Positions 4,796-38,900 of a stretch of 64,000 nucleotides of DNA are shown here, piece by piece; within the stretch, counting starts at the first letter, position 1; every line of letters begins with the position of its first letter. Both the position numbers and the translations under genes were made by a program. Source of the DNA: Blastocystis sp. Blastoise (Eukaryota; Protista; Bigyra: Opalinata); contig JBBPEB010000019.1 of assembly GCA_039096225.1 (NCBI GenBank), positions 124,001 to 188,000 on the forward strand. Reading direction: 5' to 3'. The notes beneath the pieces were generated by a model that made no database searches, was not told the origin of the DNA, and saw only the letters and a list, made by a program, of their open reading frames with translations.

Positions 4796-4943
4796 TTTTA
4801 AACCTATATAAAATAGAAAACATATAAAAAAGATAATATAAATAATTAATAAATACATAAATAAATATTAAAAATAAATAAATAAACATATAAAATAAAT
4901 AAATAATAATAAATAAATAAACATATAAATATAATAAATATAA

Positions 4944-4986
<43 letters not shown>

Positions 4987-5551: not shown

Positions 5552-5567
5552 TTTTGGGTACCCAAAA
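5552..5567. promoter_or_regulatory. Perfect 16-bp palindrome TTTTGGGTACCCAAAA, candidate bidirectional promoter element
   Basis: Identical at 12051-12066 and 25425-25440. Lies about 190 bp upstream of the RepHel ATG, between oppositely oriented intron polarities. Confidence 0.5.
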
Positions 5568-5761
5568 TGATTTTAAACCAGAATGACCCAATTATTACTT
5601 TTGTAATAAAATCAATGAAAAATTAAGGCAATTTTTGATTTCTATTATGTTTTAAGAAGCATATTTTAAAAATAGACCCTATTATATTTATTAATTCAAA
5701 TGAAATAGGATTGTTAAATACATAATCTAATACTCATTTATATATTAAATTATTAATTATG

Positions 5762-7108: not shown

Positions 7109-8613
7109 TTATGTTTAGATTTTTTTTTTTAGTTCTTTTTCTTTTTCTTTTGCTTATTATTATTATTATTTTTCACATTTAATAGCTTTCTATTATCTGC
7201 TTTCTTTATATTATTTATTTATTTATGCTGTTGTTATCGTTTTAGCTATTCTATATTTAAATGTTTTCTTTTGTTCTATTTTTGTTTTGTTCTTTTTTTT
7301 TTTTTTTTTTTATTTAAATTGTGTCGACTATTAAGATAATTCTTCAATTACTTAATATATTAAATAGTGTCAAGTTTTTAAATGTTTGGATTCAATTTAA
7401 TTTAAAATATCTATTGTCCACTTTTAACTTTATATAGTATAACTGATTTAATACTGTCAATGATTGAGATATTTAAGTTTTGTTTTTCTCCACTAATTCA
7501 TCTTGCATATATATATTATTGTGTAAATATAAAGTCATAAAAGTAAGTTTAAGGTTGTAAAATTTAAAAAATTGTAAAAAGGGGTTCTTAAACTAAGAGA
7601 TTCGAAATTCTAAAAAATGATTTAATATACACTAAGCTAAATTCTACAACATATTAAAAATTAAGAGAATTTCATTTTTGAAAAGTTAATTAACAATGTG
7701 TTTGAGTTGTCTAGAAATTTTAAAGAGTTAGCTTCTTTGTTTAAAATTGTGTTTTTATTATACTATGAAAATTTTGACTTTTAAAAACAAGTTTAAAGGG
7801 GTTTATTTTTTTAAATGTAGAAATAAGTTACTCAACGGACGAGATTCAATATAAAACATTTTATTTATCAAACTATGAACTATAGTCTAAATTATATTAA
7901 AAGAAGTGACAAAAATACTCTTGAAAAAGTGTATGACCAAATGTAAAATGTTTATAAAGAGTGTTAAAATGGTAACTAATGTATTGATAGAGTTATGTTG
8001 AGTATAGTGTTTAAATATTAGAGTTTTAAATTAACTATAAGTGTGTCAATTTTTCAAAATGTATTAAAAAGCGTCATGAGGTCAGAGATTCAAGACATTA
8101 AACTATAATTAATAAATAATACAATGAGATCTATACTGTGTGAAAGTTATGTCTAAAACGATTTTGATACAGTGGATATCGAAATGGTAAAGTCTCTCTA
8201 AAAGCGATATTGTTGATACTGTTATGTATAAAAATTCTATTTAGATTGATTTCATTAATATTAATTCTAAAACTATGTGTTTAAGTCGTTAATGTGAAAA
8301 TAAATGTTGATATTGTTGTGTTAAATTTGTTTTAGTTTTATGAAATGGTTAAAAATAGTTTAAACTACTTTATTCTAATCTATTTAAATTAATTTAATAA
8401 AATAAAAATATTTTTCAATACTTCACATTGTGACCCATTTCGAGATTTATTAGCTTTAGAAATTCCATAATGATTAAAAAAGTAACTAAACTATTTATAA
8501 ATACAAAATATATTTAAAAAAAAATAAATAACAAATATAATGAATCAAACAAGAATTTATATATTTTTTTTTGTTTTTAGTTTTTCAGATATTATTTAAA
8601 TAATCTATTTAAT

Positions 8614-8681
8614 TCTTATATCAGGAATTGAACCTGATAACAATCAATAAATGATTGTTACTCTCCATATAGAGTATAAGA
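8614..8681 (-). ncRNA. tRNA-like cloverleaf, 3'-proximal type, in copy B
   Basis: Identical to 1784-1851. Confidence 0.7.
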
Positions 8682-8934
8682 AGTTTTATTAAAATAATGT
8701 ATAACTAGGGTCACGCCGCAGGTCCGGGGCCTAACGGCACCGGACCGCGGCTGCAATGAATAATAAGTGTTTGGTTTTTATACAATTTCTTTCCTTATTA
8801 TCTATAATATATTATATATTATATATTATATATTATATATTATATAATATGTATTATTTATTAAATATTATCTATTAGATGTTACTTATTATATATAATA
8901 TATTATATATATTATACATTATTTTAATAAAACT

Positions 8935-9002
8935 TCTTATACTCTATATGGAGAGTAACAATCATTTATTGATTGTTATCAGGTTCAATTCCTGATATAA
9001 GA
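8935..9002 (+). ncRNA. tRNA-like cloverleaf, 3'-proximal type, in copy C
   Basis: Reverse complement of 8614-8681, with a GGTTCAATTCC B-box-like T arm. Confidence 0.7.
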
Positions 9003-10509
9003 ATTAAATAGATTATTTAAATAATATCTGAAAAACTAAAAACAAAAAAAAATATATAAATTCTTGTTTGATTCATTATATTTGTTATTTATTTTTTTTT
9101 AAATATATTTTGTATTTATAAATAGTTTAGTTACTTTTTTAATCATTATGGAATTTCTAAAGCTAATAAATCTCGAAATGGGTCACAATGTGAAGTATTG
9201 AAAAATATTTTTATTTTATTAAATTAATTTAAATAGATTAGAATAAAGTAGTTTAAACTATTTTTAACCATTTCATAAAACTAAAACAAATTTAACACAA
9301 CAATATCAACATTTATTTTCACATTAACGACTTAAACACATAGTTTTAGAATTAATATTAATGAAATCAATCTAAATAGAATTTTTATACATAACAGTAT
9401 CAACAATATCGCTTTTAGAGAGACTTTACCATTTCGATATCCACTGTATCAAAATCGTTTTAGACATAACTTTCACACAGTATAGATCTCATTGTATTAT
9501 TTATTAATTATAGTTTAATGTCTTGAATCTCTGACCTCATGACGCTTTTTAATACATTTTGAAAAATTGACACACTTATAGTTAATTTAAAACTCTAATA
9601 TTTAAACACTATACTCAACATAACTCTATCAATACATTAGTTACCATTTTAACACTCTTTATAAACATTTTACATTTGGTCATACACTTTTTCAAGAGTA
9701 TTTTTGTCACTTCTTTTAATATAATTTAGACTATAGTTCATAGTTTGATAAATAAAATGTTTTATATTGAATCTCGTCCGTTGAGTAACTTATTTCTACA
9801 TTTAAAAAAATAAACCCCTTTAAACTTGTTTTTAAAAGTCAAAATTTTCATAGTATAATAAAAACACAATTTTAAACAAAGAAGCTAACTCTTTAAAATT
9901 TCTAGACAACTCAAACACATTGTTAATTAACTTTTCAAAAATGAAATTCTCTTAATTTTTAATATGTTGTAGAATTTAGCTTAGTGTATATTAAATCATT
10001 TTTTAGAATTTCGAATCTCTTAGTTTAAGAACCCCTTTTTACAATTTTTTAAATTTTACAACCTTAAACTTACTTTTATGACTTTATATTTACACAATAA
10101 TATATATATGCAAGATGAATTAGTGGAGAAAAACAAAACTTAAATATCTCAATCATTGACAGTATTAAATCAGTTATACTATATAAAGTTAAAAGTGGAC
10201 AATAGATATTTTAAATTAAATTGAATCCAAACATTTAAAAACTTGACACTATTTAATATATTAAGTAATTGAAGAATTATCTTAATAGTCGACACAATTT
10301 AAATAAAAAAAAAAAAAAGAAAAAGAACAAAACAAAAATAGAACAAAAGAAAACATTTAAATATAGAATAGCTAAAACGATAACAACAGCATAAATAAAT
10401 AAATAATATAAAGAAAGCAGATAATAGAAAGCTATTAAATGTGAAAAATAATAATAATAATAAGCAAAAGAAAAAGAAAAAGAACTAAAAAAAAAAAAAT
10501 CTAAACATA

Positions 10510-11856
10510 ACCATAACACTAAGAGAACCTATATAGATAAAAGATATATATATATATAATAAGAGATAGTATAATAAATATATCTAACATATATATATAT
10601 ACCTTCAGTATTAAAAACTATTCACACCATCACTATATAGATATAAGATATAGATATATTAAAAGAAATATTATAAATATTTGTTATATATATATATATA
10701 TATATATACCTTTAGATACATTTTTATTATTAAAATGAAAGCTAACATTAGGGTGATAAGATCCCCTATTAGAAAAGACACCTATATATAATATAATAAA
10801 TGATAAAATATATATAAACAATAAATATATATATATACCTTCTAAAGAAGGAACAGAGGAAACACCATGATATCTTAACTGACTTGAAGAACCTATATAT
10901 AATGAAAAGATAATTAATAAATCAAAAAAAAAGAAAGGAAGAAATAAGAATATACCTGTATCATTATTACCATTAATCCAAGACTCCATAAGAAAAGAAC
11001 GACCTATATAAGATAAAAATAATAATAAACTAAATTAAATTTAAAAAGTAGACATACCTTCATCATTAATACGTTCAGCAACTACAACCACAACAGTAGA
11101 ATAACCTATAAAGAAACAGTAATAGACAAATAATAAATAAAAAAAAATAATAATAAATGAATGACAATATATATATACCTTTAATATCATATGAGCAGTC
11201 TACCTGATCACCAACAACATCCATAGCAACATTTACATCAATAAAACAAACCTATATATATAAAAGTAAAAAAAGAAAAATAAATGAATGACAACATACC
11301 TTCAACACCACACAGACATCTATTATCAACATCACTGTTAACATGTACAACAACTGAAGAACCTATATATATAGAAATAATAAAAAAATAATAATAAAAT
11401 ATAAAAAAAAAAAATAAATGATTGGTAACATACCATCTATAAAGCAAGAAGAACCTACATCAACACCGATATCACTATTGGAATCACTTACAATAACAGA
11501 AGAACCTATATATAAAGAAAAGTTAAAAAAATAAAAACAAATCATTGACAACATACCTTCACAGTTAGCATAACAGGCAACACCACCACCTCTGTATGAT
11601 ACAAATAACATAGAACAACCTAAAATAATATAATAAATAATTAATAAAAAAAGAAATGGAAAATATATACCTTTAAGACCATCAGAGCAAGTACCACCAA
11701 GACTAAGAACATACATAACTGGATTCTATTGAGTAGAAGAACCTAAATATGAATACTAATAACAAATAGATACAATATACCTGATTTTCTTTGAAATATA
11801 AATTATTTTTTATTTCCAGACCTCCACCTTGAAGCAATTTTGTTGTTCTTAGACAT
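10510..11856 (-). pseudogene. Degenerate RepHel micro-exon array in copy C
   Basis: Reverse complement of 5762-7108. Confidence 0.8.
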
Positions 11857-12631
11857 CATAATTAATAATTTAATATATAAATGAGTATTAGATTATGTAT
11901 TTAACAATCCTATTTCATTTGAATTAATAAATATAATAGGGTCTATTTTTAAAATATGCTTCTTAAAACATAATAGAAATCAAAAATTGCCTTAATTTTT
12001 CATTGATTTTATTACAAAAGTAATAATTGGGTCATTCTGGTTTAAAATCATTTTGGGTACCCAAAAAACATAGTTCTTTACTCTTTTTTAAATATTTTAT
12101 TGTATTGATTGACTTAGTGTGTTTTATTTATTTATTTAAAGTTATTTAACTTAGTATTATATTTATCTATTTATATACTAATTTATTTATTTAAAATAAT
12201 ACACTTCTTTATAGGATTCTCTTGTATTTGCCTTGGTTGTCATGGTTAGTGGTTCTTGAAGTGGTCCTGGTTAAATGAAATGGTTTATTTAGTGTCAGGT
12301 ATATAAATATATATATTTTTTATAATATTTCATTTTTAATTCATTTGTTTCTTTAATTGTTTCTTTTTTTATTATCTTTTTGGTTTATATTTTCTTTATA
12401 TATAATTAATCAATAGATTATTAGTTATTTTTATTCTATAGGGAAGAAAATGTAACTGATGTGTGTGTTATACTCTTCGTTTTTTCATGTCTTTCTTTTA
12501 AATCTGTGGTTTCAGGTTGATTTATATGTATATATTTATATTTTATTTATTATTTTTGTTATTTATTGTTTCTTTATTTATTTATATTTTATTTATTAAA
12601 TTTATTTTATTTATTTATTTATTTATTTATT

Positions 12632-12674
<43 letters not shown>

Positions 12675-13252
12675 TTATATTTATTATATTTATATGTTTA
12701 TTTATTTATTATTATTTATTTATTTTATATGTTTATTTATTTATTTTTAATATTTATTTATGTATTTATTAATTATTTATATTATCTTTTTTATATGTTT
12801 TCTATTTTATATAGGTTTAAAATCTTCTTATTCTTTTTTTCTTCTTTCTTCTTCCTTCTTACTTCTTTCTCATTCTTTCTACTTCCTATTTCCTTCTTCA
12901 TTCCTTCTTCCTTCTTCCTATTTCCTTCTCCATTCATGCTTCCTTCTTCCTATTTCATTCTTCATTCATGCTTCCTACTTCCTACTTCCTACTTCCTTCT
13001 TCCTTCTTCCTCATCTTTGATTCTTCTTACTTACTTCTTCTTCATTCTGGATTCTTCCTTCTTCCTCATCCTTCCTTATTCTTACTTCTTCTTACTTCCT
13101 TCTTTCTCATCCTTCTTCCTCATCCTTCCTTATTCTTACTTCTTCTTCCTAATCCTTCCTACTTCCTTCTTCCTCATCCTTCCACTTCATTTCCTTCTTA
13201 TTATATATATATAAATATATATATTTGATTATTATTATTATTTATAAACTCC

Positions 13253-13318
13253 TTTTATGCTCTAGAAGGAGAGAAACAATCATATAGATTGTTTTCAGGT
13301 TCAATTCCTGACATAAAG
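13253..13318 (+). ncRNA. tRNA-like cloverleaf, 5'-proximal type, in copy C
   Basis: Reverse complement of 4300-4365, followed within a few nt by a T7 run. Confidence 0.7.
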
Positions 13319-13348
13319 TGTTATTTTTTTATTTTTTAATATTTTATT

Positions 13349-13407
<59 letters not shown>

Positions 13408-15492
13408 TCTTTTTTAAATTTATTTTAAACCATTTTAATTTATACTTTTCAATTTTGATCTTAAACATATATATCTAACTTTTTATAGCTTTTTTAGACT
13501 TCCTCTTCTTAACAACAGTCACAATGAGAACAAATCTATTTATACTCAAACAAATAAATTATCTCTAAACTGTTTGAATCAATCAATATAGACGTGTCTG
13601 ACATAATTTATCAATTTAAACTCAATTTTAATAATTAAAAGTAAACAAACCAAACACACATGTCGACTTTAAAACGTTAAACTCAGTATTAATAATTTAT
13701 TTTTATAGAGTAAACACGAAACATTGATTTATACAAAAAGGAATGGAAACAATCAACTCTTGATACAACTTTACCATTTGGCAAAACACTCATCCACAAT
13801 ATTTTCTAAAGTACTTTTCATAAAGTGTTTATATACACATGCTATCTATAAAATGAAAGTCAACTTCTTGAATCTCTTTGTTTAAGACACTACTTAATAC
13901 ATTTTGACAAATAGACAACCTTTAACTTATTATATAAAGCTAATATTTTAAAATTAAACTTGATTTAGACCTATGAACACATTAGTCAACACTTTAGACT
14001 TTTTAAAGACACTTTACCATTTGGTCATACACTTTGATCAAAATATTTTTGTCCCTCCTTTTAATATAATATAGGTTATACACTCTAGTTTAATGACTAA
14101 AAGCTCTTATTTTGAATCTCGTCCTCTAAGTCACTCATTTTTACATTTTCTAAAAATTAAGACCCTTAGAGTTGATTTTTTAAGTTAATTTTTCTACAGT
14201 GTTCCAAAAACACGATTTTGCTCAAACTGAAGTAAAAATAAATTTTAAATAATAGTCACAACACCTCACACATCCATTCTTTAAAAATTATTTTAACTGT
14301 ACTTTTGATATGTTGTAGAGCTACTACAGCTGTACACTAATTAATATCTCTAAATTTTTTATTCATAGTTTAAGACTATGTTTTACACATTCTTTTAAAT
14401 TTGACAACCTTAAACTATTTATTTAAAGCTCTTATTCATAAAATAGACTTGATACATGATTCTAAACACATATATAAACCCTTTTACTTTTTAAGACACA
14501 TTTTGTCATTTGGTCATACACTTTGACCTTCATAATTTTGACTCTCCTTTTAATATAGAATAGAGTTATAAGTCTAGTTTACTAAATAAAAGTCATAATA
14601 TTGAATCTCTCACTCTAAGACCACTTAATTCACATTTTTCAAAATTGTCACTTTTAAACTCGTTATTTTAAAACTCTGTTTTAACTATAGTAGTTTGATG
14701 ACCTATTGATTACTATGCTACAATATTAGTCCATTATAAGAAGATCGAAGAAAATATCGATCACTCAAAAATCGTCCTCAGGAGCTCAAAATCGCTACAC
14801 CTAGGTTTTTGGACCTCCTGAATCAGAATATCATGTCAAATTGAGAATCTAAATTTGACCGTTAAGGCCTCACGTGTTCAATATGAAAAAGTATTAAAAA
14901 ATAGATAAATATAAAGAATAAACACGGATAACGTATATTGTGGGATTGAGAAAAAATCAAGTTTACCCCATGTTTATTTTTCAATTGTCTGGTCAACAAT
15001 TTTTATCGGGGTCACCCCAAAGAGCCAATCAAAAACGACTCAAAAATCATGTTTTCTGTTTTTTTATTAATAACTTTTTAATTATAAACAATATCGCTTA
15101 TCCAAATATACGGTGCAAAACTACACGTTATATCGTATTGAACTGTGTTTCAACCAAAAGTTAACTCCCCGTAAGTTTAGAGGAGTTGCGGCGACAAACT
15201 ATAGTATATAGTAGCCAATCAAATGGTTTTTCCAAAAACTGACCAATGGGAATTTTTTTGCCTATTTGCTTTATAATAGTAATGATATATATAATATATT
15301 ATATATAATAAGTAACATCTAATAGATAATATTTAATAAATAATACATATTATATAATATATAATATATAATATATAATATATAATATATTATAGATAAT
15401 AAGGAAAGAAATTGTATAAAAACCAAACACTTATTATTCATTGCAGCCGCGGTCCGGTGCCGTTAGGCCCCGGACCTGCGGCGTGACCCTAG

Positions 15493-16547: not shown

Positions 16548-16837
16548 AAAATTTTGTACTCATTTCAAAAATAAATGTTTTCATATTTACTAGGGTAACG
16601 CCGCTGGCGCACCGCCTAACGGCGACGCGCCGCGGCTGCGTTGTTCAGTTGGGTTTTAAAATTTTTTATTAAACTTTATAGAACAAAACCATTTTTTTTA
16701 TTATAAACATTTTAAAAACAAATAAAAAGTGAAAAAGTAAAAAATTAAAAAGAACAAATATTTAACAAACATAAAACAAATAAAACAAAAGAAACAAAAG
16801 AAATAAAAGAAGAGAGGAGAAAAAAAAAATAAAGCAT

Positions 16838-19800
16838 TTAATTATTTAGAGTAGACCTGAAGACCACGTTCTTAGTAAATATTTCATTACTACTACTAAT
16901 CATCTTACCTTGAGAAACACTATCAACTACCTTAATAAAAAGAGAGTTGAAAGATCGGGCACGACTAAAAGCAACATAGAGTTGACCATGAGAGAAGACA
17001 GGACGATCTAAATAAACACCAACTCTTTCAAATGTTTGTCCTTGAGATTTGTTGATAGTCATTGCGAACGCTAAACGAATAGGAAATTGTCTTCTGGATA
17101 TAATAATAGGAAGATCTTCAGGATTTGAATTACAGATAATTCTTGGAATAATAACAGTACGTTCATCAATAGTAAGAGAAGGAGGAGGATTTAAAATAGT
17201 AGCAGTAATATTATTTGATCCTAATCGAGTAACTATAAGTCTAGTACCATTACATAATCCTTTAGAAGGATTAAGATTTCTTAAAAGCATAATGATACAA
17301 CCTATTTTTAAATTTAATATATGAGGAGGCATTCCAGAAGGTGTTTGAGAATTAATAAACTCGATAGGATAATTTGATTCTGGATCATCTGTTTCAGAAT
17401 CAAGAATAGAATCAGAAGAGATATAAGGAGTAGTAGTTCCAGAAAGAAGATTATCTACAATGAAATCATTTAAAGTACCAACACAATCATTAGTAGAAGC
17501 TAATATAACAGAAGAAGCTAATCGTTTAATATCAGAATCAAGAGAAGTATTGATTCTATGTCCAAATACAGTAACACATAAATCATCATTTACAATACAT
17601 TGAGGAGGAATAGGAATATAATCTATATCTAAATGATGACTAATAGTATAATTATTAGAAAGAACACCATCTCCTACTTGTAATAACCATTGTCTAAAAT
17701 CATCTGCTCCTTCTAAAGCTCTCATATTTCTTGATAAATGAATGACATTATTCTTTATCGAATTCCATAAGGAACAAAACTTTATAGAAGAACTAACAAT
17801 CTGAGCTTGAGTTCCTTTTCTTATAACTGGTAAACATTGTCTGAAATCTCCTCCTAATACTACTGTTTTACCACCAAAAGGAATATCTAATTCTGTATTC
17901 ATTATATCACATAATAATCTATGTACTACCATAAAGCAATCACCTTTCATCATAGGAGCTTCATCCCATATTATTAAATCAGCTATTCTTATTTCTTCTA
18001 CTTTTCTTCTATCTCTAGCTAAATCTATATTTGAAGTAGAATCAGGATCAACATTCAAAGGAATACCAAATTGTTTATGAGCTGTTCTACCACCTGGTAA
18101 TAAAGTAGAAGCAATTCCTGTTGAAGCTACAGGTAATACATTCTTATTATGTCCACGTAAATAACTTAATAAACTATTATATAAGAAAGTCTTTCCACTT
18201 CCACCTGGACCATCTATAAAGAAACATAACTTATCTTCTATTCTACTACTTTCTATTGAATGAATTACTCTATCAAATGCATTTCTTTGTTCTTCATTTA
18301 ATAATTCTATTACTCTATTAGCTTCTTGTAATTCTAAAGTAGGATTATAATTATAATCATTATAATGATGTTGTTCTTCTACTTGAGGTAATCCTAAATC
18401 ATTATAATTCACTCCTATACTTATCATCATCTCTTTTATATCTTGTAAAGTACGTATTTCATAATCTTGAAGAACACTATTAGTATCATCTTCTATAACA
18501 CTTGATGAATCTAAATCTTGAGCTAAAGGAGTATTTATATAATCTATTTCATTATTATGCATTGAATGTTTATAATCTTCACTAAGAAATGATTTAAATC
18601 GAATCCAAAACTCTTTTACATTTGTTAATAATGATTCTGAAATATAAGTAATAAATAATTGTCTCAATTGACATGGAGTAGCAAAAACAATAGCTTCTGA
18701 AAATGAATCAAATACTTCTCTCTCATTATTCAATAATCCTCTTGCTATAGCTGCTTCACTAAAGGTTCTATAAGGTTCATTACGATTCAATCCTTTTACT
18801 ATCTTCAAAGAATCAAAGCTATCAGCTCCTTTCGTATTCAATAATAATAATCTCAAAGCATATCGTTCTTTATCTTTTGGATTCACATAATACATTCTTC
18901 CTAAAGCTTTTATATCTCTCTGACGTCTATTCCAAGTATTTGTATTCGATTTCCATACATAATATTTTGGTATTTCATGATAAGCATAAATAGGATATTT
19001 CTCATCTAATATTTTCAATAATTCTTCTGATATATTATCATCATCTACTTCATAACTATTTATTCTATTTATCTCTTCTAAACGAACTTGAATCAATTCT
19101 CTTTCTTCTTCTACATTATTCATATTACGAATACCATGCTTCTTCTCTATATAATAATAAGTATATATCTTTCTTTGATTCTGAACTTCTTTCTCTAAAT
19201 CAAAGTATTTTGTTAATTTAGTACCTTTCTCTAAACTATTTCTTAATGCTTCTTCTTCGTGTCCTTCTCGAAATAATATATATGGATCATCAGGTAAATG
19301 AATAGGTAATCTATTAATAGAAACAGAATTATAAGTAATTTCAAAACAATTCAAACGATAAGAAGCTTCAGGAGGAGAAACATATCGACAATCTAAATAA
19401 GCTTGAGTTTCATCTACTATTCCATTATCATTCACTCTTCTTAATTGAGCTATCACAGAATCATTTCCTTTTAATGCATATTTATATATATATTTAGTAC
19501 TTTGAATATTACAACAGACTTCTACATTAATATGAGCTTGATATTTCAATAATAAATAAGGATTATAAGGAACTACCCAACGATTATCAATAGTATAAGT
19601 ATTATGACTACGAATAAGAGTAATAGTTCTATCAGGAATATTTCTTCTTTGATATAAAGGATAAGAATTTAAATGACAATTAGTTTGCTCTATATATTCT
19701 TTTGGAAATCTCTTACTACATTTACCTGTTGATCTATCAATACAAACACAATTCGTATCATAATCAGGACCACATGGACCATGAATCATATGTTTCTTAA

Positions 19801-21844
19801 CTAATTCATAAAGAAGAGGAGTTGATTCTTTATCGGGAATCTCTGCACTTATTATACTATCTACTTCATCTTCTGTTCTATATTTAGAATTCGTATCTAA
19901 AATAATTAATATATGAGAATGTGGTAAACCTCTCTTTTGGAATTCTACTGAATATAATAAAGCTTCTACAGTACCAAATATATTCTTATCCTTTATATCA
20001 GAAAGCAATTGTTTCAACTTTAAATGAAACACTCTTGAAACTAAATCTGGAAATTCATTAACAGTATAACCTTCTGGAATATTATTCTTTATTTCTAACC
20101 AATCTGGATTGCAAGTAAATGTAATAAATAAATCAGGTTTACCATATTCTCGAACTACACTCATAGCATCCATATATTTCTGTTGTAAATTTCTTGGACT
20201 ACCAACAAAAGAAGAAGGTAATATAATAGCTTTACCTATTCTATCTATATTTCTATCATTCTCATTTATTTGATCTCCTCTCTCTTCTAACATATTATTT
20301 ATATTCTGATAAGTTGAAGCTCTTAACTTATTTTGATTATTTCGTATATAATTAATTCTATTTTGTTCAACTCGGATATAATTATCAGTAATATATTGTA
20401 AAGTTAATTTCTTATATTTTAATAAATAATTATCATAAGGTGGATTTTTCATTTGAAGCATATAATTATAATATTCTAACATAGTAATAGTAATTTGATT
20501 AGAACGATTCAATGATAATAAATCTGGATACCAACCTTGTCTTCCAGTTGGAAACATAACTGGATAAACCATACAATCTATATATGAATTAGTATTCTTC
20601 ATTACTATATATTGACCTGAAGTATAACGATTCTGTTCATTATTACTATTAGTAGCTACTATTTCCATACCACTTCTAGGAAAACAACAATAACTTCTTT
20701 CTGGCATTACTCCTCCTTCTCTATATTGATATATTACTGCTACTTCATCTACTTGAGGAGTATTATATCTTCTTATATCAGGTACTTCTCTTCTTTGTTT
20801 CTTAAATTCTATTAATAAATTAATATTACTTCTATTCATTTGACTATTCTCTTCTATTACTTCATCTACTCTTTCTCGAAGTGAATTATATATTTGAGCT
20901 AATGGATGATATTCTCTTATTGTACTATCTAATATCTCTAAAATATTTGGTTTTAAATCACAAAAATATCGATTCATACTTCTCATATGAGTAGCTTCAT
21001 CTCCATCTATCATATAATATTGATTGAATACAGGATGTCTTGTAGGATCATTCACATCAAAATCTAAAGCACTCTTAAAAGTATGATATATATTACCTCC
21101 ACATTTAAATAATAAAGGTCCAGAAGAATTTCTTAAATCATCATCAGAAGTATTATTTCCAGCTAAAGAAGCTAAAGCAACAGAATTATTATATCGAATT
21201 ATATTATTAATAAATTCTCTTGAATCTGGATTATCTCTTCTTAATAAAGAACGAATAGTATTAGGAAGATCAGGAAGTTCAGGAAGAACTACTTTACCAC
21301 TACCACAGCAAGTATAAAACTTATCATTCATTCCTTTCTCTAATTCAAAATGTTTAGCATGACAATATTCACAATGAACATTAAAATCACCTAAATAATT
21401 AGCTTTATAAGTATTCAATGCTTCATTTAATACAAAATCACCATGAGAATCTATATAAAATAATATAAAATAAATATTTATATATATAAATACTTCTTTG
21501 AATAGAAGCAATACAATTATGTAATCCAGGATATAATAATCTTTGTTGATTATCTATAAAAATAATTTATTATTTAATTATTTATAAAGAATTATAAAAA
21601 ATAAATAGCATACAAATATCTAAAGCTCTTCTTCTTCCTCTATTAATAATAGGATGAATAATTATATCTTCTTCAACTATAAATAAAATTTAATAAATAT
21701 ATTTAAATAATAAAAAAACATACTATTATCTGTTATAGGTCTTCTAATAGTTCTTACAACTGGTATTTCATCATTATTTTGAGTATTACTATTAATATTA
21801 GGAAAAGGATCAATATAATCAGAATCAGAATCATTATCAGAAAA

Positions 21845-21875
<31 letters not shown>

Positions 21876-24800
21876 TCACTTGAACTACTACTACTACTAT
21901 TAGGTATTGTTGTTATAATTTCTGATTCATTATCATTATTTAAATTAATATGAGGAATATTTGTTAGAATACTTAAAGGAGGAAGAATAGGACTTAAATC
22001 AGGAATAGTTAAATAACTATTCATAATGGAATTAATAGATCTATTATTTCTATGTATTATTGTTTCATTATTATTAGTATTAGTGTTATTTCTTGAATGA
22101 TTCGTATTATCATTAATGATTGTAGAATTATTATTGTTAGATATACTTACATCAGTTGGAATAGTAGTAACAACAGATAAAGAGTGTGAAGAAGTATTAA
22201 TAGAATCATTATTATTATTAGAAACAGAAGTATTATTTTCTGTAGGTTGTATAATAGTAGTTGATATAGGAATAGATGAATTATTATTATTAATTTGACT
22301 TTGAACAATAGATATGTTATTAATTGATTGATTAACTGGATTCATTTGATTGAATAGGTTTGAACCATTATTTAATATAGAATTATTATTATTTATTTGT
22401 GAATAACTATTATCTATATCAATATCAATATTGTTATTTGAATTATTGTTTTGAATGTTTTGTAAAGGAATATTATTTTGAAAATTAAAAGTCGAAAACA
22501 AAGCTAAAGGTTTAGTGTTAAAACCAAATGATTTAGATAAATCATTATTATTTATTTTATCCTTATTGGAACCTATATATATTAATAGTTAGATATTAAT
22601 TATATTATGTTTAAGTTTAGAATAAAGTTTAGTTGTGTATTATATAAATTAACTTTCATTGTTATAGTTACTGAAGTAATTATTAATTAATATAAAGTAT
22701 AACCTTTATTAATATAATATAATACATAGATATAGTATGATAATATATATATTAATTTAAAGTATAACCTTTATCAATATAATATAAGTCATAGATATAC
22801 TATGATATATATTAATTAATATAAAGTATAACCTTCATCAATATAATATGATACATAAGTATAGTATGATATATTAATTAATATAAAGTATAACCTTTAT
22901 TAATATAATATAAGTCATAAGTATAGTATGATATATATTAATTAATATAAAGTATAACCTTTATTAATATAATAATACATAGAATATAATATGATATATA
23001 TTAATTAATATAAAGTATAACCTTCATCAATATAATATAATACATAAGTATAGTATGATATATATTAATTAATATAAAGTATATAACCTTTATTAATATA
23101 ATAATACATAGATATACTATGATATATTTATTAATATAAAGTATATAACTCTTATTAATATAATAATACATAGTTATACTATGATATATTTATTAATATA
23201 AAGTATATAACCTTTATTAATATAATAATAAATAGATATACTATGATATATTTATTAATATAAAGTATATAACCTTTATTAATATAATAATACATACATA
23301 TAGTATGATATATTAAATAATATAAAGTAAAAACTTTATTAATTAATTATTATCTTCAATACTATAATGTAATGAAAGATAATATTATAATTAATGAAAA
23401 CTAATATTAAATAAGTATAGGTAATTAGTATTGTATAATTTATTAAACAATCTATATGATTCAACCTCATAGAGGACATCTATAGCTATTGTGCTTTGTT
23501 ACAACATTCTATAAACATATAGCTAACTACCAGTTAATATCATATACAATGTGAGTAAGTGAAGAATCTTAACACTTAGATATCTCAATCATTGATAGTA
23601 TTACATCGGTTAGACTATATAGAGTTAGAAGCGAACAATAGTCAGCAATAGTATGAGTCATATAGGTAATCAATAGTTGTATTAATTAAATTAAATACAA
23701 ATATTAAAATACTCAACACTATTTAATATTAAGTAATTCAAAAATTATCTTAATATCCGACACCTTCCCGTATATATCGACACGATTAAAGTAAAATTAA
23801 AATAAAAAAAAAATAACAAAACAAAAAGGAAAAAAGAAAGGATTCTATTAAATATTTAAATACTAAGTAGCTAAAGCTAAGCTTAGTAAATAAATATATA
23901 AATAGATAATAAAAAGAAAGCAGATAACAGAAAGCTATTATCTGTGAAAGAAAAAAAATAATAAAACAAAAGAAAAAGAAACTAAAATAATAAATAATAC
24001 TTACCCACAACTTTATTTGAACCTATATAAGTATAGAATATAATATAAGTATAAATATACCTTGAATAATTGAAGAACCATTGACACCATCAACGACTGA
24101 AGAATTATTAACACCATCACCTATATATATATATACAATAGTATAAGTATAAATAAATAAATAATATTATATATATATATATATATATACCTTTATATAT
24201 ATTAGTAGTAACCATATCAAGACCAACATCAGAGTCACACGATCCCAAATTAAAAGACACACCTATATAGAATCATAAAATAGAATAAACATAGATACAT
24301 ATATATATGTATATACCTTCTGAAGAAGGAATAGAGGAATGACCATGTACTAACTGAGTTGAAGGACCTATATAAAAACAAATAAGAAAGAATTAAAAGA
24401 AAAATAATAAATATATATATATGATATATCTATATACCTTTAGCATTAGAAGGATGATCACCATCAGATACAGTACCATGAACAGAAGACACTATCAGAA
24501 CAGAAGGACCTATATATATTTATAAAATAAAAGTATAAATCAAAAAGAAGAAAAAGAAAATATATTATATATACCTTCTTTATGAATAACATCAGCACTA
24601 ACATTCACAGCAACAGAAGAACCTATAATAAAATATAAATAGGAAATAAAAGAAATAATTAAAAATAAATAAATAAATGAATGATTATATACCTTGAAGA
24701 CCATGAGTAGAGTTAACACCACCATCAATAGCATCAGCAACAACATCATCATGAGTATAAGAACCTATAGATAAATAAAAATTAAAAAAAATAAAATAAA

Positions 24801-25232
24801 TGATTGACAACATACCTTCAAGACCGTGAGTAGAGTTAGCATCACCATCAATAGCTCCAGCAACAGAGTCCACAACAATAGAAGAACCTATAGAAAATAA
24901 AATATAAAAATAAAAACAAATGAATGCCAACATACCTTCAAGACCACACGATAACCTTACACCATCATCAGAATAGGACACCATGGACATAGAAGAGCCT
25001 AAGATGATATAAAATAATAAAACAAAAAGAAATGTATAAATATATACCTTCAAGACCATATTGATAAGCACCATCACCATCAATGACATCCATGCTTGCA
25101 TCCATCTGAGTAGAAGAACCTATATATGAATAATAATAAAGAATGGTAAAACATACTTGACCGTCTTTGAGAAATATAGCTTTTCCTATTTTCAGACCTC
25201 CGCCTGGACGACATCCGAGTCTTCTTAGGCAT
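16838..25232 (-). CDS. Helitron RepHel (HUH Rep plus Pif1-like helicase), predicted 15 exons, ~2086 aa
   Basis: The last exon (21450-16838) has a Cys cluster CEYC...CCGSGKV, Rep motifs FITFTCNP, EFQKRGLPHSHIL and YIYKY, and helicase motifs GPGGSGKT, IWDEAPM, GDFRQCLPV, TINKSQGQT and HGQLYVAFSR. Upstream exons are inferred from GT-AG sites and frame continuity, with lower certainty. Confidence 0.93.
22680..23345. repeat. AT-rich minisatellite, ~58-bp unit, ~11 copies, in RepHel intron 11
   Basis: Repeated attaatataaagtataacctttattaatataatataatacatagatatagtatgata. Confidence 0.9.
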
Positions 25233-25587
25233 CTTATTTAATAACTAATTATAAAATAAGTATTTTTATGAAGAAAACAAAATCTTATTTTGATTTCAAT
25301 TTTTGTAAAATAGGGTCAACATTTAAAATATGTATCTTTAAAAATATAATGAATCATAATTAACCTCGAATTTTTATTAATTTTATTGCTAAACTGATAA
25401 TTGGGTCATTTTTTGTTAAAAACATTTTGGGTACCCAAAAACTGTAGTTTTTTACATTTTTTAATTATTTGATTATATTGATTGTCTGTATATGTTTTAT
25501 TAATTAATTTGATATTGTTTAGTTATTATTTTTATATTTATATATATAGATTTATTTATTTATTGAAAATAATACACTTTTCTATAG

Positions 25588-26533
25588 GATTCTTTTGTAT
25601 TTGTCTTGGTTGTGGTGATAGAAGCTTCTTGAAGTGGTCCTGGTTGTGCTACATGGCTTATTTATTGTCAGGTATATAAATATATATATTTTTTATAATA
25701 TTTTCTTTTTCATTTGTCCATTCATCTGTTTTACTTATTATTTTATTTGTGTATTTTATTTATTTTTTCTTTATATATAATTTATTCTATATATTGTTAA
25801 TTATTTTTATTCTATAGGAAGAAAATGTTGTTGATGTGTTGTGGTTTTCGTTTTTTTATGTCTTTCTTTTTTAATCTGTGGTTCCAGATTAATTTATAGG
25901 TATATATTTATATTTTATTTATTATTTTTATTATTTATATGTTTATTTATTTATTTATTTATTTATTATATTTATTTATTATATTTATTCATTTATTTTA
26001 TTTTATTTATTAATTTTATATTATTTATTTATTTATTTATTATATTTATTTATTATATTTATATTATTTATTTATCATATTTATATTATTTATTTATTTA
26101 TATGTTTTTATTGTATATAGGTTTAATAGTCTTCTTATTCTTTCTTTCTTCTTCCTTCTTCATTTTACTTCTTCCTTCTTCCTTATTCTTCTTTCTTCTT
26201 CCTACTTCTTCCTGCTTCATCATTCATCATTCTTCCTTCTTTCTTCTTTCCCATCCTTGATTCTTCCTTCTTCCTTCTTCTTTATCCCTGATTCTTCCTT
26301 CTTCCTTATCCTTGATTCTTCCTACTTCCTTCTTCTTCATCCTTAATTCTTCCTTCTTCTTCTTCATACTTCCTTATTCCTCATCCTTCCTACTTCTTCC
26401 TCTTCATTTCCTTCTTATTATATATATATATATATATTTAATTATTATTATTACTCTTTAAACTCCCTTTATGCTCTAGAAGGAGAGAAGCAATCATTAT
26501 AGATTGTTTTCAGGTTCAATTCCTGACATGAAG
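25588..26533 (+). ncRNA. Putative spliced transcript divergent from RepHel, ending at the tRNA-like element
   Basis: Host-type TATAG acceptors at 25587, 25817 and 26120, GTATAT donors at 25672 and about 25900, and T-rich introns. Acceptors are conserved in copies B and C. No shared ORF. Confidence 0.42.
26467..26533 (+). ncRNA. tRNA-like cloverleaf in autonomous copy D
   Basis: CTTTATG / CTCT-AGAAGG-AGAG / AAGCAATC-ATTATA-GATTGTTT / TCAGG-TTCAATT-CCTGA / CATGAAG, followed by T runs. Confidence 0.72.
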
Positions 26534-28411
26534 TCTTATTTTTCTTTTTTTAAATATTTTATTTACATATTATTATATATATATATATTCTCTTTTTTTA
26601 ATTTATTTTAATCCAGTTTAATTTATACTTTTCAATTTTGACCTTATATATATATATCTAACTTTTTATAGTTTTTTTAGACTTACTCTTCTCAACAACA
26701 GTCACAATGAGAACAAATCCATTTTAACTGAAACAACTAAGTCATCTCAAAACTGTTTGAATCAATCAGTATAGACGTGTATGACATAATTTATGTATTT
26801 AAACTCAATTTTAATAATTAAAAGTAAACAAACCAAACACACATGTTGACTTTAAAACTTTAAACTCAGTGTTAAATGGTTAGTTATAAAGAGTAGACAC
26901 AAAACATTGATTTATACTAAAAGGAATGAAAACAATCAACTCTTGATACAACTTTACCATTTGACAAAACACTCATCCACAATATTTTTCAAAGTTCTTT
27001 TAGTGAAGTGTTTATATAGACATATAATGTATAAAATGAAAGTCAACTCTTTGAATCTCTTATTTTAGGACAGTCTTTAAAACATTTTGACAAATAGAGA
27101 ACATTTAACTTGTTATTTAAAGCTAATATTTTAAGAGTAGACTTGACTTGAATGAATAAAAACAACAGCTAACACTTTAAACATTTTAAGACATACTTTA
27201 CATTTTGCCGATACACTTTGACCTTCATAATTTTGACTCTCCTTTTAATATAGTATGGAGTATTATCTCTAGTTTATTAAATAAAAGTCATTATATTGAA
27301 TCTCTCACTCTAAGACCACTTAATTCACATTTTTCAAAATTGTCACTTTTAAACTCGTTATTTTAAGACTTTGTTTCTACTATAGTAGTTTGAGGACCTA
27401 TTGATTACTATGATACAATATTAGTCAATTATAAGAAGATCGAAGAAAATATCGATCACTCAAAAATCGTCCTCAGGAGCTCAAAATCGCTACACCTAGG
27501 TTTTTTGACCTCCTGAATCAGAATATCATGTCAAATTGACAATCTAAATTTGACCGTTAAGGCCTCACGTGTTCAATATGAAAAAGTCTTTAAAAATAGA
27601 TAAATATAAAGAATAAACACGGATAACGTATATTGTGGGATTGAGAAAAAATCAAGTTTACCCCATGTTTATTTTCCAATTGTCTGGTCAACAATTTTTA
27701 TCGGGGTCATCCCAAAGAGCCAATCAAAAACGACTCAAAAATCATATTTTCTGTTCTTTTATTAATAACTGTTTAATTATAAATAATATCGCTTAACCAA
27801 ATATATGTTGCAAAACTACACGTTATATCCTATTGAACTGTGTTTTAACCAAATCTTAACTCCCCGTAAGTTTAGAGGAGTTGAGGCTACAAACTCTAGT
27901 ATATAGTAGCCAATCAAATGCATTTTCCAAAAACTGACCAATGGGAATTTTTTTGCCTATTCTCATATATATAGTAATGATATTTATATTTTTTATATTT
28001 CCTCTTATTTGTATTTTATATCAATACTATAATAATATTAACTTGCTATAAATATGTATATACTTTGAATTGCCCAAAATGGGTGCCAATCTGTTTTTGT
28101 TTTTGGTTTCTGATATTCTTTTTTCATTAGTAACCTATAGATAGAATGTATTAGCAATATGAATGCAGAAATTATAAAAATATATGAATACTCCTTCAAA
28201 GAGGGAAGAATGCTAATAAATAACAAAGAAATTATGACAAATTTTTAATTAATGATAATCTACTGTAATAAAAAAATATTCTTATTGTGGTGAAATACAT
28301 AATAATAGAAGAAAAAGGAGAATAAACAAAAAAAATAACAAATCCACTTTTTTTTGTCAAAAATACTTTTTTAAACAAAAAAACCACAAAAATAAACAAA
28401 AAATACGACCA

Positions 28412-32945: not shown

Positions 32946-35900
32946 TTATATATCTTTCTTAGTATCTTTTTTTACTTCTACTGATATATTCATTGGCTGA
33001 ACAGATTTGGTTGTTACATTAGTTTTTCGCACCAATTTTGATTTTGGTTTTGATATAGGTTTGATTTTCGATTTTGAATGTTTTTTCTTCTTTAAACAGA
33101 AGAATAGAATAATAGCTAGAAGAAGAATTATAATTAAGCAGGATATGCCTATAATAATATAAAGAAGAGAAGAATTATTTTCTATACAACTAATAAGAAT
33201 AGGTTTCGAAATACTTCCCATACTATTACTACATGTAATTATATATCTCTCTATTTCTATTATACTTGTGAATGTACCTTCTATTATTGCTGTTTTACTA
33301 TCAAAAGTAACTCCAGAAGGTAAAGAAGGTTCAATAGAACAAGTATATTCAGCAGCTTGAACATAAGGAATAATCTTAATATGTTGATTGATAACCGCGG
33401 TTATTATTTGTGATTCAAAAGAGATATCACGAGGTGCACTTAATGAACAATAATCTACAAGATCTCCATAATTACCATTAGAACAATATCTACGTTTATA
33501 TCCTTCATAATATATACCACATGATATATAGGAATAACCATAATCTAATGAACCACCATCTTCTTCTGTATAACAACTTTTCATTACTGTCTTTGAATTA
33601 AATGATAATTCAGATAATTGAAAACCATAATTACTAGTACTTCCTGGATATAAACAACTATTTAACGATTCAGCATCATCTAAAGGTTGATTATTACATT
33701 CTGTAACAATATATTTATAATAATGATAACTTTGATCATTAAAGAATGTAAATGTAACACTTTGTGAATAATACGTAAACATATAATCTCCTACAACATG
33801 TAATATAGACCATTGAATACCATCTTTAGAAGCTTCTAATCTCCATCCACTAGGATGACGCACATTACATGAAGGACCAATAGTAATAGTATAAGAAGTA
33901 ATATATTCATATAGAGCATGAGGTAACTCAAATAGAAACATTGCTCCTACACATCGAGGACCAGTAATCGATAAAGTGCCTGCATTATTATCAAATAATG
34001 TTATTATTTGATTTTCATTATCATTAGTATCAATGTCACTTGTTATTGTTCCTTTTAATAAACGTCTATTATTATTCATAATAGGATATACAATACAATC
34101 GAAATCATTATTATTCATCTCTTTAGAAGATCTATGTAATTCTATTCCTATTATATTATTACCTGATTGTAATGTATTATTATTAATACTAAATGAACCA
34201 CCCGAGTATTGACTTTCTATATATTCACTTAGAGCATATGTAGTTCTAGTTATAATTCCATTAGGCATATTATATCTATATAATTCATGTCCATTTATAT
34301 ATACAACTACACCAATTGTACTTTGCACTTGTATATAAAATGATGAAAAAAGAGATAATGATGATAATTCTAATGTATATCGATAATATTCTGTAGCACT
34401 ATTTAAAGCAGGAAATGTACCTGCTTTCCCTTCTATCCAATCAGATACATCATATTCTATAGTCAACCAATCATCATCAACATAATTACCTCCTGAAAAT
34501 AACCATATACTCTGTTCTAATGAAATATAAGCACCAAAATATAACTCTTTAATAATTTGACCTTTTCCTCTTTCTATTCCTCCCTTATATAATAATATAT
34601 CTTTATATAAAGAAATGGATAAAGATCCTTTATTCCAACCTAATCCTATTTGATCATATATACTTATTGTACCTTGAAATGGCTCTTTACAAATTGAATA
34701 TATATTATTATAATTTGATAAAACTTTATTATATTCTAATATAGTAGATCCATATATAGTATTAATTTGAAATCCTTGATTTTCTCCATTTGATCCACCT
34801 AACATTTCTATAAGGAATCTTTGATTTGGTAATATACATTCTTTTATAGTTAAATTGATAGTAGTTGAAGATACAGTACCATCTGGTTTAGTAGCAGTAA
34901 TAGTATATTGAGTCTTAGATAAAGTAGTAGTAGGTGTTCCTAGAATTACACCTACTGAAGAATCAAAAGTTAATGGAGAAGGTAGAGAAGGACTTATAAT
35001 ATAATTACTATAATATATAGAATTCGAATAGATTGTTGAAATAGGCATATTTATATATCCATATATATTTGAAGGAGAATAACTTAAATCATTAACATTG
35101 ATATTATCTATATTTTCTGATAAAAATTGAATTTCAGAAATACCTAATTGATAAGGTATAGAATTAGGTTTATAAGTAGATGTAAATATAAATATATAAT
35201 ATCTCCATGGATGAGGATTTGTAGGAATATAAAAACATTTCTTTTGACTTCTAAATGAATAATGAACATTATTTACAGAAGACAAATCATTAAAATCATT
35301 ACCGTTATCACTACCAAATAAACTCCAAGAAGAAGGATCAGAATCTTCACTATTTGTACCACTTATAATACAATATTTATTTATATATTCACTATGATGG
35401 CTACCATAATAAAATCGAAATACTACACTAGAAATAGAAGGTAATTCAACAATACAGTCTTCATTTGATTTATAATCAAATAAAGCATTAATATTAGATG
35501 CTTCACTACTAACACTTGTACTAATATCCCAACTACGAGAGATCTCATTGGACAATGTCATCATTATCATTGTTAAATCGAAATCTATTGGGCAAGTTGT
35601 ATTTAACTGCCAATTAAATACACCAACAGACAAAGAATTTGACCCTGAATGTACATCTCGAATAGGTAATGTTATAGTAAACCATTGAGGCATGGACTCA
35701 CTTGAAGTGGGTCTTGTAAAGATATTTAATGTTCCTGTAGGTAGAGAAAAACGATAAACTTCTTTATCATTTATATAGATAATAAATCCGTTACGAGCAT
35801 AAATACGTATCATATATGAAGAAAAAGTGAGAGAAGAAGGAATAAATGACTTTTTAAATAACCAAACAGTACTTGTAGCAACATGACTAGAAGGAGTATA

Positions 35901-38900
35901 TAAAGAAAAAGCTACACCTTGAGAGTTACTTGTATACCATGAAGAAGAAATAGCTCCTTGAGCATAACTCCATGCACTCTCTTTACTTTTAATAGTTGCT
36001 TGAATATTAACTTTATATTGAACATAAGCAGAATCATATAAATATAATTGTTGATATAAAGTATATGCATCATCAAGTTTAATATATATATATAAATAAG
36101 AACCATTACTCCAACCATCACCTAAAGAATCTTCTAAAGTAAAATATAATAAGGAACTACTAACACACATAGTGGTCGTATATTCACGGTTATCTTTATA
36201 AGATGGAGAAGAATAAAGAATATTCCCAGAAATATCACTTACATAGAAACTTTCTTCTCCAGCCCAAGAAGTTGTCTTCTTTACAAGTTTTATTAGCATA
36301 CTACTTGTTTCACATTCTATATAAAGATAATAGGAATATTGTATATATAAATATAGTTTATTAAAATAATAATTAATGTTATTTTATATATATATAGAAA
36401 ATAATAATAAATATAGTAAATAATAAATAGAATGAATTATATTTATATTATATAAAATAAAATAAAATGAAATAAAATAAAATAAAATAAAATAAAATAA
36501 TTAAAATAAAATAAAATGAAATAAAATACTAAATATAATATTGATATAATAATAATAATATACCATGAAATGTTAATATAAATTGATAATTTGCAGGATG
36601 TACATCATCATCATATTTATATGCTGAAATGACACAAATAGCAGTAACAGCTGTATTGGGCATTCCTTCAATAGTACCACTAACAGGGTCAATAGAGAGA
36701 CCCGTAGGAAGAGAAGGAGAGGAAGAGAAGGAAGTATATCCACTAGAAAGAGGACTCATTACAATTGGGTCTAAACTCACATAACTATTAATAGTATTCC
36801 TGGCATACCACAGTCCCGCGGAAATAGGATCATAATTACACGGTAATAACTTAAAGGAAGAAAGAGCAAGAGAAGAAACTTTAGAGGATGTACCTATAGA
36901 AATATACATATATATATAGCATATATTTATTATTATTATATTATATTATATTATATTATATATATTATATTATATATACTAATAACAAGTTTAAATCGTT
37001 TAAATGATACTGTATTCGATCGTAAGGAGAACATAGCTGTTTGAGAACGTTCGGAAAACACAAATCCCTCTCGATAATCCAACTGGATCCATCCTTCATT
37101 AATTACATCAGTGAGATCGTCAGACGTACCATATTGACTCCCATATAATGTCCATGTTTGAGGATCCCCGTGGGAATCATCAGGAGAATTTGTTAATGAA
37201 TATGAATTCACCCAATAAGCTCTATATATATTTATTTATTTATATATAATGAATAGTTAAACATTAAAAAAAATATTAAAAATATATATATATATATATA
37301 TATATACTCATCATTATTAAATGTATATTGAATAGTAAGAACACGTCGAGTACTATAATAATACGTATAAGTTGTTCCATCGAATATTCGATCACATCCA
37401 TAACCAGGTGACGCAGCTGTCGCTGGAACACAATTATAAGTTCCTCCAACAAGCACTGAATATCCACATTCTATATATAGAATAATTAATTAATAATAAT
37501 AATAATAATAATATATATATATATACGTGAAGATTCTTTAATAATGAACATGGCTGCAACATTAAACTCATCCATAATTCGATAATCATTCGGATCCCCG
37601 TGGGAATTTTGGTGTACTTGAATTCCTAAATAGCCCACAGAAGTTGTTGTAACGAAACTCTTACTAACTGAAAACCTATATATGTTTATATATAATATAT
37701 AATATATAATATATAATATATAATATATAATATATAATATATAATATATATATACTTATGTATAGATGTCTCTGTTGAAGGAGCAAAAGAAGAAGCAGTA
37801 CTCCATTCAATTGTACCTCTATATACAATTATAATATAATTATAATAAAAAAATATTATTATAATTAAAAAAAATAATAATACCTATAATAATAATAAAA
37901 AAAAAGCATTATCATAATTATAATAAAAAAAAATTATTATAATAAAAATAATAACAACTATAATAACAATAACTATAATAATATACATAGGTAGATGTGT
38001 GCGATAGACTTCCCGTCCATTAAAATAAGCTAAAAAAGGGAATTTAGTTTTAATAATAAATATAATAGTAGCCAGTTCATTTAATTCGGGTGTATTCAGT
38101 GAGATTATATAACTTCTAGAAATATCGGTCATTATAGGTAATTCATCCGGTAAACCACTGTACCATGAAGAACTTACACGGTTATACCATGTACTTGAAT
38201 AAGGATCACCATCTTTATAATATACGGAAGAACCAAATTCAACATCAATGTTTACTATTTATATATATAGATTATTTAAAAAATATTAATTAAAAAATGT
38301 ATTTATATATATATATATTATTTAAATAATATTATTTAAACAATATTATTTAAATATATATTATTTAAATATATATGATTTATATATATTATTTAAAATA
38401 TTATTTAAATATATATTATTTAAAATATTATTTAAATATATATTATTTAAATAATAATAATAAGCAATATAGACATACCATTAAAAATTTCGGAGGATAA
38501 ATAGACATATTTTCCTACTTGATAAGGCATTGTTGTTCTTAAGAGTAAGACTCCATAAAGATAGAACGATAGCAATGAAGGAGAAGTCTCAGAACCCCAA
38601 CCGTTTCCTTCACTATATATAGAGAATATATGATTTTAAAAGCAAGTAATGAATTCATACGTATCTCGCATGAGCACAGTATGTTGACCCTCTTCTGTAC
38701 ATATATGCCAAATTCGAGTATTTTCATTATCAGTAAGATTTCCTCGATATGAAAATAGCTTGATACCTACGGTTGACGACCCTTTCCAAATCTCAAACAT
38801 CTCCGACGTTGCATTCTGTGAGAAGTCTTTTCTTATTTCTACGTCAAATAGGGACGGGTCACATGCAAAGATTACTAAAATAATTAATATTCATATAGAT

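Follow-up and report, generated by a model that had tools for sequence, protein, structure and literature searches.

A 64,000-nucleotide stretch of the Blastocystis sp. Blastoise genome (contig JBBPEB010000019.1, positions 124,001 to 188,000; the window) carries on its minus strand a Helitron transposon whose RepHel transposase gene appears to start with a row of very short exons. The question raised by this locus is whether these micro-exons are coding exons of the transposase gene and, if so, what keeps them open. The anatomy of the gene, its Helitron identity, the pattern of selection on it and its variation between copies were established here. The best-supported reading, with a probability of roughly 0.65, is a fused 15-exon gene in which a translated, unstructured and fast-drifting N-terminal arm must stay open for RepHel to be reached.

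Gene model and host element

The gene was checked exon by exon. A sequence-only reading of the window had proposed its exon starts and lengths, GT-AG sites, phase-1 introns and an open frame of ~2086 aa, and all of these were verified. The 15 minus-strand exons measure 76, 72, 63, 72, 72, 48, 72, 51, 72, 60, 18, 849, 63, 60 and 4613 nt. The introns are GT-AG in 14 of 14 cases and phase 1 in 14 of 14, the internal exons are multiples of 3 (13/13), and the 2086-aa frame from ATG 25232 is free of stops until TAA at 16838-16840. The parts of the gene, in window coordinates, are:

25157..25232, minus strand: exon 1, with the ATG and a basic 25-residue N-terminus that resembles a nuclear-localisation signal
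25048-25119, 24936-24998, 24816-24887, 24693-24764 and 24575-24622, minus strand: micro-exons 2 to 6, symmetric, phase 1
24438-24509, 24317-24367, 24191-24262, 24061-24120 and 24005-24022, minus strand: micro-exons 7 to 11, symmetric, phase 1
22573..24004, minus strand: intron 11, 1,432 nt, with a 62-bp minisatellite at 22681-23347 and an identity breakpoint near 22701
21724..22572, minus strand: exon 12, 849 nt, an Asn/Ser-rich low-complexity region
21614-21676, minus strand: exon 13
21494-21553, minus strand: exon 14
16838..21450, minus strand: exon 15, the RepHel core, with a Cys/His motif, a Rep domain (HUH and two-Tyr), a Pif1 helicase (Walker A) and the stop at 16838-16840

The joined product was identical, at 2086 of 2086 residues, to GenBank protein P0123 (KAK8800711.1 / KAK8792731.1), a hypothetical protein of Blastocystis sp. 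'Blastoise' (strain Rus-B). Searches with the spliced product used this public protein or single exons. The top database match was a 2079-aa 'hypothetical protein' of Blastocystis sp. 'Blastoise', whose cluster comprises 17 proteins of that genome. Four fused full-length GenBank models of 2079-2086 aa were found, for which the cluster table gives seven accessions, and exons 13 and 14 occurred in every full-length GenBank model read. The 15-exon gene is already in the public annotation, where it is unnamed, and the proposal that the micro-exons are coding exons of the RepHel locus is matched by this independent model of the same 2086 aa. The Rus-B genome (from the gut of a Russian tortoise, 33.3 Mb, 23% GC, BioProject PRJNA1084774) was annotated with BRAKER3, StringTie and Mikado, with scoring that favours introns supported by RNA sequencing (PMC10690189).

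A chain finder recovered 10 consecutive symmetric phase-1 micro-exons at the array, against a maximum of 6, and usually 1-2, in 300 Markov simulations of matched composition. Elsewhere in the window, long symmetric chains were confined to two other Helitron arrays and, trivially, to the interiors of long open reading frames (ORFs). The ORF list presents the locus as ORFs of 1557 aa and 274 aa, with a single entry of 138 aa at the micro-exons. The array had been described as invisible in the ORF track, which is correct apart from this entry, an unspliced read-through (24685-25101, minus strand). As a gene, the 138-aa ORF was rejected. It stems from introns 3 (48 nt) and 4 (51 nt), which are stop-free multiples of 3 here and are not multiples of 3 in other lineages, and open stretches of that length arose in 3% of simulations. 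In its translation, hydrophilic peptides from the exons take turns with hydrophobic inserts of 16 aa.

The locus is the transposase gene of a canonical, active-looking Helitron, whose landmarks outside the exons are:

16590..27980, minus strand: autonomous Helitron, 11,391 bp, with 5'-TC (27980-27979) after a host A and CTAG-3' (16593-16590) before a host T
25233..27980, minus strand: non-coding 5' leader, with (AGGAAGA)n at 26130-26416 and (AAATA)n at ~25900-26110 (direct reading and TRF)
16600..16636, minus strand: GC-rich subterminal hairpin with a 16-bp stem, ending 6 nt before CTAG and 10 nt before the last base

Three copies share the 5' boundary of the element and five share its 3' boundary, and their flanks are unrelated. 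The insertion lies between A and T with no target duplication, the termini are of the 5'-TC and CTRR-3' type, and the subterminal hairpin (-20.1 kcal/mol, z -2.6 by DNA folding) was kept in five copies. ATG 25232 sits 2.75 kb inside the element, and the leader upstream of it is 75-90% identical to non-autonomous copies of the same window. Pfam models matched the large exon as Helitron_like_N (1.8e-56, full-length, 1-191/191), PIF1 (2e-64) and Pif1_2B (2.5e-19), and the motifs HSH, Y-x-x-x-Y and GPGGSGKT (Walker A) can be read in P0123. The protein combines a Rep endonuclease with a C-terminally fused helicase of the Pif1 type (superfamily 1). Exon 12 matched no Pfam family; its amino-acid identity among copies was 88-97%, with in-frame indels.

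Constraint, copies and recombination of the arm

Micro-exons 2 to 11 are 18-72 nt long, multiples of 3 and phase 1-1, separated by introns of 38-70 nt, and together with exon 1 they encode the first 226 residues. The array was compared among six lineages that are 83-100% identical. None of 42 splice-site bases (21 sites) had changed, where 10.6-12 substitution events were expected from per-base rates (Poisson P about 1e-5). Over a minimum of 171 substitution events in 676 exon columns, no in-frame stop was found against ~4.5 expected (P = 0.01). Exon indels were multiples of 3 in five of five cases (6, 3, 18, 42 and 3 nt; P = 0.004), and intron gaps were of any length from 1 to 20 nt. Moreover, all four RepHel-linked copies that were examined carried an unbroken, in-frame chain into exon 12, despite differing exon lengths and 11 versus 12 arm exons. 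In lineage L024, which has 12 arm exons, two 33-nt exons replace one 60-nt exon and exon 7 is 30 nt long; in L023, exons 5-7 are shorter. The expectation that the arm varies among copies was thus borne out when exon number was compared, in the form of in-frame indels and one extra micro-exon (L024).

The two ends of the protein are strongly constrained. The RepHel ORF was intact in five of five copies, with a ratio of non-synonymous to synonymous divergence (dN/dS) of 0.01-0.08 and a proportion of synonymous differences (pS) of 0.03-0.046. When the two types of exon 1 were compared, 12.5 of 17 synonymous sites differed (pS 0.75) versus 9.5 of 58 non-synonymous sites (pN 0.15; Fisher P = 7e-5), and the basic character was retained between types, so that exon 1 is under purifying selection. 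For exons 2-11, dN/dS was 0.8-2.0 and the rates per base type were equal to those of introns; therefore, the arm drifts at the neutral rate. Positive selection on the arm was considered and rejected, as dN/dS above 1 in several pairs was non-significant (Fisher P 0.07-0.23). Faster mutation of exons than introns, or hypermutation, was rejected as well: in raw terms exons diverge 2-5 times more, an excess that reflects the faster mutation of G and C sites, which are scarce in the nearly all-A-and-T introns, and that vanishes per base type. A free sequence, strict frame and splice sites, and decay where RepHel is missing are the features expected if the arm is translated as a spacer ahead of an essential enzyme.

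Such decay was seen in unlinked arrays, in which some splice sites are gone and stops and a frameshift are present. Across the genome, at least 40 copies match the array region at 67-100% identity, and at least 40 match the 5' terminal 940 bp at 89% or better; the array lies ~1.7-4 kb downstream of the Helitron 5' end in every case where both were located. The family is multicopy, with non-autonomous derivatives that share its termini, among them the 6.6-kb copies in the window:

8705..15285, minus strand: non-autonomous relative B, 6,581 bp, which shares the 5' module and whose micro-exon array (~10500-11860) is decaying
2336-8704 and 15286-15492, plus strand: sister copy C, which hosts the nested copy B 207 nt from its own 3' end

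A further Helitron 3' end at 2081 brings the number of Helitrons to four within 28 kb of the window. In copy B, the homologues of exons 1 and 2 contain stops and those of exons 10 and 11 are broken. The L031 array has a 1-nt exon deletion, and several non-autonomous copies are without some of the exons.

From 22701 to the 3' end, copies L024 and L025 share 97-98% identity with the window, and identity breaks sharply inside intron 11. The 5' modules reach only 75-87% (78-87% in L024), and the C4 arm (of the L025 RepHel copy) is 77% identical to the window. A mosaic was also seen within the arm: exon 1 and its flank, a block from exon 5 to exon 7 in L019 and a block from exon 7 to intron 11 in L020 differ by 20-30%, while adjoining blocks are near-identical. 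Mosaic divergence and the identity break together indicate that lineages swap arm blocks by recombination, with one breakpoint inside intron 11. The position of that break points to recombination at or near the 62-bp minisatellite. In three other lineages, the homologues of intron 11 are 1430, 1494 and 851 nt long, with GT-AG and phase 1 every time. Moreover, a 50-nt arm intron is missing from one genomic non-autonomous copy, L027 (1570-1671 versus L029:1564-1748), and the gap matches its GT..AG borders exactly. Recombination with spliced cDNA would explain this loss, as would a deletion between the AGGT repeats found at either end of the intron.

The claim that the micro-exons are tandem paralogues was confirmed in part. 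Exons 2-7 are paralogous (alignment z up to 21.5, for exon 4 versus exon 5; TRF period 123 bp, 81% matches), as are introns 3 and 4 (z 9.3). For exons 8-11, paralogy was not demonstrable by the same alignment and TRF analysis. The N-terminal arm had also been proposed to be disordered. No Pfam family matched it and its AlphaFold2 model had a mean predicted local distance difference test (pLDDT) score of 26, values that are consistent with disorder and are not proof of it. A search of 1.84 billion representatives returned arm proteins of the same genome and, outside it, one weak, repeat-inflated match. Capture of a host gene as the source of the arm was rejected, since no homologue was found beyond the Helitron arms of this genome.

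The weak match concerns the exon 6-7 peptide (24438-24622), which resembles a flavodoxin-type FMN-binding motif (…GDPPSNA…) in P0137 at 37-39% over 44-46 aa. P0137 is a 1,839-aa metagenomic 'sulfite reductase flavoprotein-like' protein in which the matched motif is repeated six times, and it is the sole hint of a captured origin. As a captured source it was rejected, because the 30-bit similarity is inflated by repetition and probably due to chance.

Several further observations were made around these elements. A second, distant Helitron family lies at L027:3982-9312 (minus strand), with a RepHel 37% identical and a 1,372-aa ORF after a 362-aa ORF; no micro-exon array was evident there, though none was specifically sought. 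A ~30-nt motif that contains GGAATTGAACCTG and resembles a tRNA T-arm occurs on the minus strand at ~26505-26535, in the autonomous 5' leader, and at ~8975-9005, near the 3' end of non-autonomous copy B; a tRNA scan of the window (ARAGORN) found no tRNA. Host-like ORFs nearby are:

32946-36299, minus strand: host-like ORF
54909-62015, plus strand: host-like ORF
49665-50864, plus strand: host-like ORF

Two of these neighbours are large proteins with He_PIG Ig-like domains, one of them also with an HRM domain, and the third is an N-terminal fragment of Hsp70.

Splicing evidence and alternative readings

The splicing of the arm into RepHel was examined in contigs from a single run of uncertain type and in the public gene models. 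One contig joint removes exactly intron 6 (24510-24574). Several points, however, weigh against the fused gene. The same contigs also cover intron DNA unspliced, and the precise intron loss in the genomic copy L027 means that the intron-6 joint could be DNA. A joint from exon 11 (24005) to exon 12 (22572) was absent from the contigs of that run, and no assembled transcript-derived protein covers the region of exons 10-12. GenBank models other copies as two genes, one with the arm only (226-232 aa; P0135, P0139 and P0140) and one with RepHel only (1859-1881 aa, at least four loci), and one copy with such a split model, on C23, is 99.9-100% identical to the window across the aligned array and flanks. 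Intron 11 is more than 20 times as long as the other arm introns and holds both the minisatellite and the identity break near 22701. In-frame Met codons in exon 12 (e.g. P0123 residue 303) could start an arm-less RepHel, and preservation of the frame would also fit a functional stand-alone arm protein. Public gene models for the same element are inconsistent, fused in some cases and split in others.

An alternative ending for the arm can be read in the window:

23863..23881, minus strand: alternative terminal exon, reached from the second GT of the GTAAGT donor (24000-23999) through the acceptor AG 23883-23882, with its stop at 23863

This ending would give a 232-aa arm protein that finishes ...VVGNLALAT, and the same ending is annotated at the three arm-only loci. 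The main rival is accordingly an arm-only isoform or a separate gene, which is compatible with the fused gene and does not exclude it. In its strong form, the array would mainly or also be a separate gene for a basic-headed protein of 232 aa (donor 24000, terminal exon 23881-23863), RepHel would be made from its own start near exon 12, and the short protein could act as a regulator of transposition. We regard this as somewhat unlikely. The arm-only and RepHel-only models, the alternative ending in the window, the identity break within intron 11 and the 5' module, which travels with its array in non-autonomous elements lacking RepHel, all speak for two products. On the other hand, a foldless stretch of ~200 residues at dN/dS about 1-2 has no obvious reason to hold its frame alone, arrays unlinked to RepHel decay, and the alternative exon contributes just six residues. 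Moreover, some split models coincide with a disrupted long intron or a missing RepHel: the start of P0134 is translated from the 3' hairpin of an inserted Helitron, and L032 is a truncated copy. The RepHel-only models P0134 and P0133 (on C23 and another contig) both begin with residues from the GC-rich 3' hairpin of another Helitron, probably because nested insertions in intron 11 misled the annotation.

A related possibility is that the arm is a regulated module, in which the tandem donors of exon 11 choose between the full transposase and a 232-aa arm-only modulator, and micro-exons are skipped or exchanged between lineages as diversifying selection (dN/dS up to 2) acts on them, with escape from a host factor as one conceivable benefit. 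If this were true, the transposase would contain a system that generates diversity from micro-exons; we consider it unlikely. More doubtful still is that the arm is an untranslated or functionless relic, with the micro-exons as a spliced 5' leader, a RepHel start at an internal ATG of exon 12, and a frame kept through the youth of the copies. Exons 2-11 do evolve at the intron rate, exon 12 does contain in-frame Met codons, and RepHel synonymous divergence among copies is only 3-4.6%. However, exon 1 is under purifying selection in the predicted frame, blocks that diverged by 20-30% are still in frame, and the combination of no stops, no indels outside multiples of 3 and no splice-site changes over 171 substitution events would be very unlikely under neutrality. 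Finally, the array could be imagined as a chance product of an AT-rich minisatellite, given that GT and AG are frequent in DNA of 23% GC and that the greedy exon walker, which was applied to the arm only, over-calls introns within ORFs and yields spurious phase-1 'introns' even inside the RepHel ORF. This idea is effectively refuted by the simulations (a chain of 10 against at most 6), by conservation across lineages and by the same model in an independent annotation.

Proposed mechanism, related systems and meaning

Under the fused-gene reading, translation would start at ATG 25232 with the basic exon 1, which may act as a nuclear-import signal, and would continue through the ten micro-exons and the low-complexity exon 12 into the RepHel core. 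Exon 11 is predicted to be spliced to exon 12 in vivo. The arm is probably disordered and would serve as an unstructured spacer under essentially neutral evolution, with no selection on which amino acids it contains. Any stop, frameshift or lost splice site in the arm would abolish the transposase downstream, and frame and splice sites would stay intact in transposing lineages for this reason. The arm would have grown as an exon-plus-intron unit of ~120 bp, with AG|GT at its borders, was duplicated in tandem. As every such unit is phase 1-1 and a multiple of 3, the gene would tolerate its duplication or loss as well as in-frame indels, and recombination between lineages would then shuffle the arm blocks.

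Intron-containing RepHel genes of canonical eukaryotic Helitrons have been described in plants, nematodes and other animals. The present element resembles these in its Rep (HUH, two Tyr) and Pif1 helicase in one protein, an N-terminal Cys/His motif, 5'-TC and CTRR-3' ends, a subterminal hairpin, insertion at A|T and non-autonomous derivatives with the same termini. It differs in an extension of ~600 aa upstream of the Cys/His motif, the first 226 residues of which come from eleven exons, ten of them symmetric micro-exons of 18-72 nt. In the literature searched, no paper connecting Helitron transposases with micro-exon arrays was found. The architecture is unusual, but not unprecedented.

A comparison with schistosome micro-exon genes (MEGs) had been drawn, and it applies to the architecture only. 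Both systems have runs of very short symmetric exons (here ten of 18-72 nt, phase 1-1, where MEG-like runs consist of symmetric exons of 81 nt or less), an architecture that permits in-frame gain, loss and skipping of exons. MEG introns are long, up to 5 kb, and their products are secreted, whereas the arm introns here measure 38-70 nt rather than kilobases and the N-terminus is rich in Lys and Arg, with no hydrophobic leader or signal peptide readable in the sequence. In addition, the present gene belongs to a transposon and its arm is fused to a 1,500-aa enzyme. The arm search of 1.84 billion representatives showed no homology to schistosome MEG families. MEG products are likewise described as fast-evolving, with high dN/dS (bioRxiv 10.1101/2023.06.21.545858; PMC4350168).

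Two further systems resemble parts of the locus. The somatic repressor of the P element is a truncated transposon product made by alternative splicing. The candidate 232-aa arm-only isoform, from the alternative donor, would likewise share its N-terminus with the full transposase; it differs from the P-element type in that it has no recognisable DNA-binding or catalytic part and is known from gene models alone. In the Rogers model, an intron is gained when a segment bounded by AGGT is duplicated in tandem. Exons 2-7, with some of the adjacent introns, likewise form paralogous units bounded by AG|GT, and each duplication adds an exon and an intron in frame. In contrast to that model, the unit here already has a complete intron, so that the process amplifies exon-intron units rather than creating introns from exon sequence.

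The locus documents active-looking Helitrons in Blastocystis, which the Rus-B genome paper neither discusses nor mentions (PMC10690189). It offers a clean natural example of how symmetric exon-intron units can multiply, be trimmed and be reshuffled within an essential gene that stays intact, with the arm selected for nothing but to 'stay open and stay spliced'. With its many dated copies of the element, this single 33-Mb genome provides a series in which intron gain by unit duplication, precise intron loss and the origin of disordered extensions can be studied.

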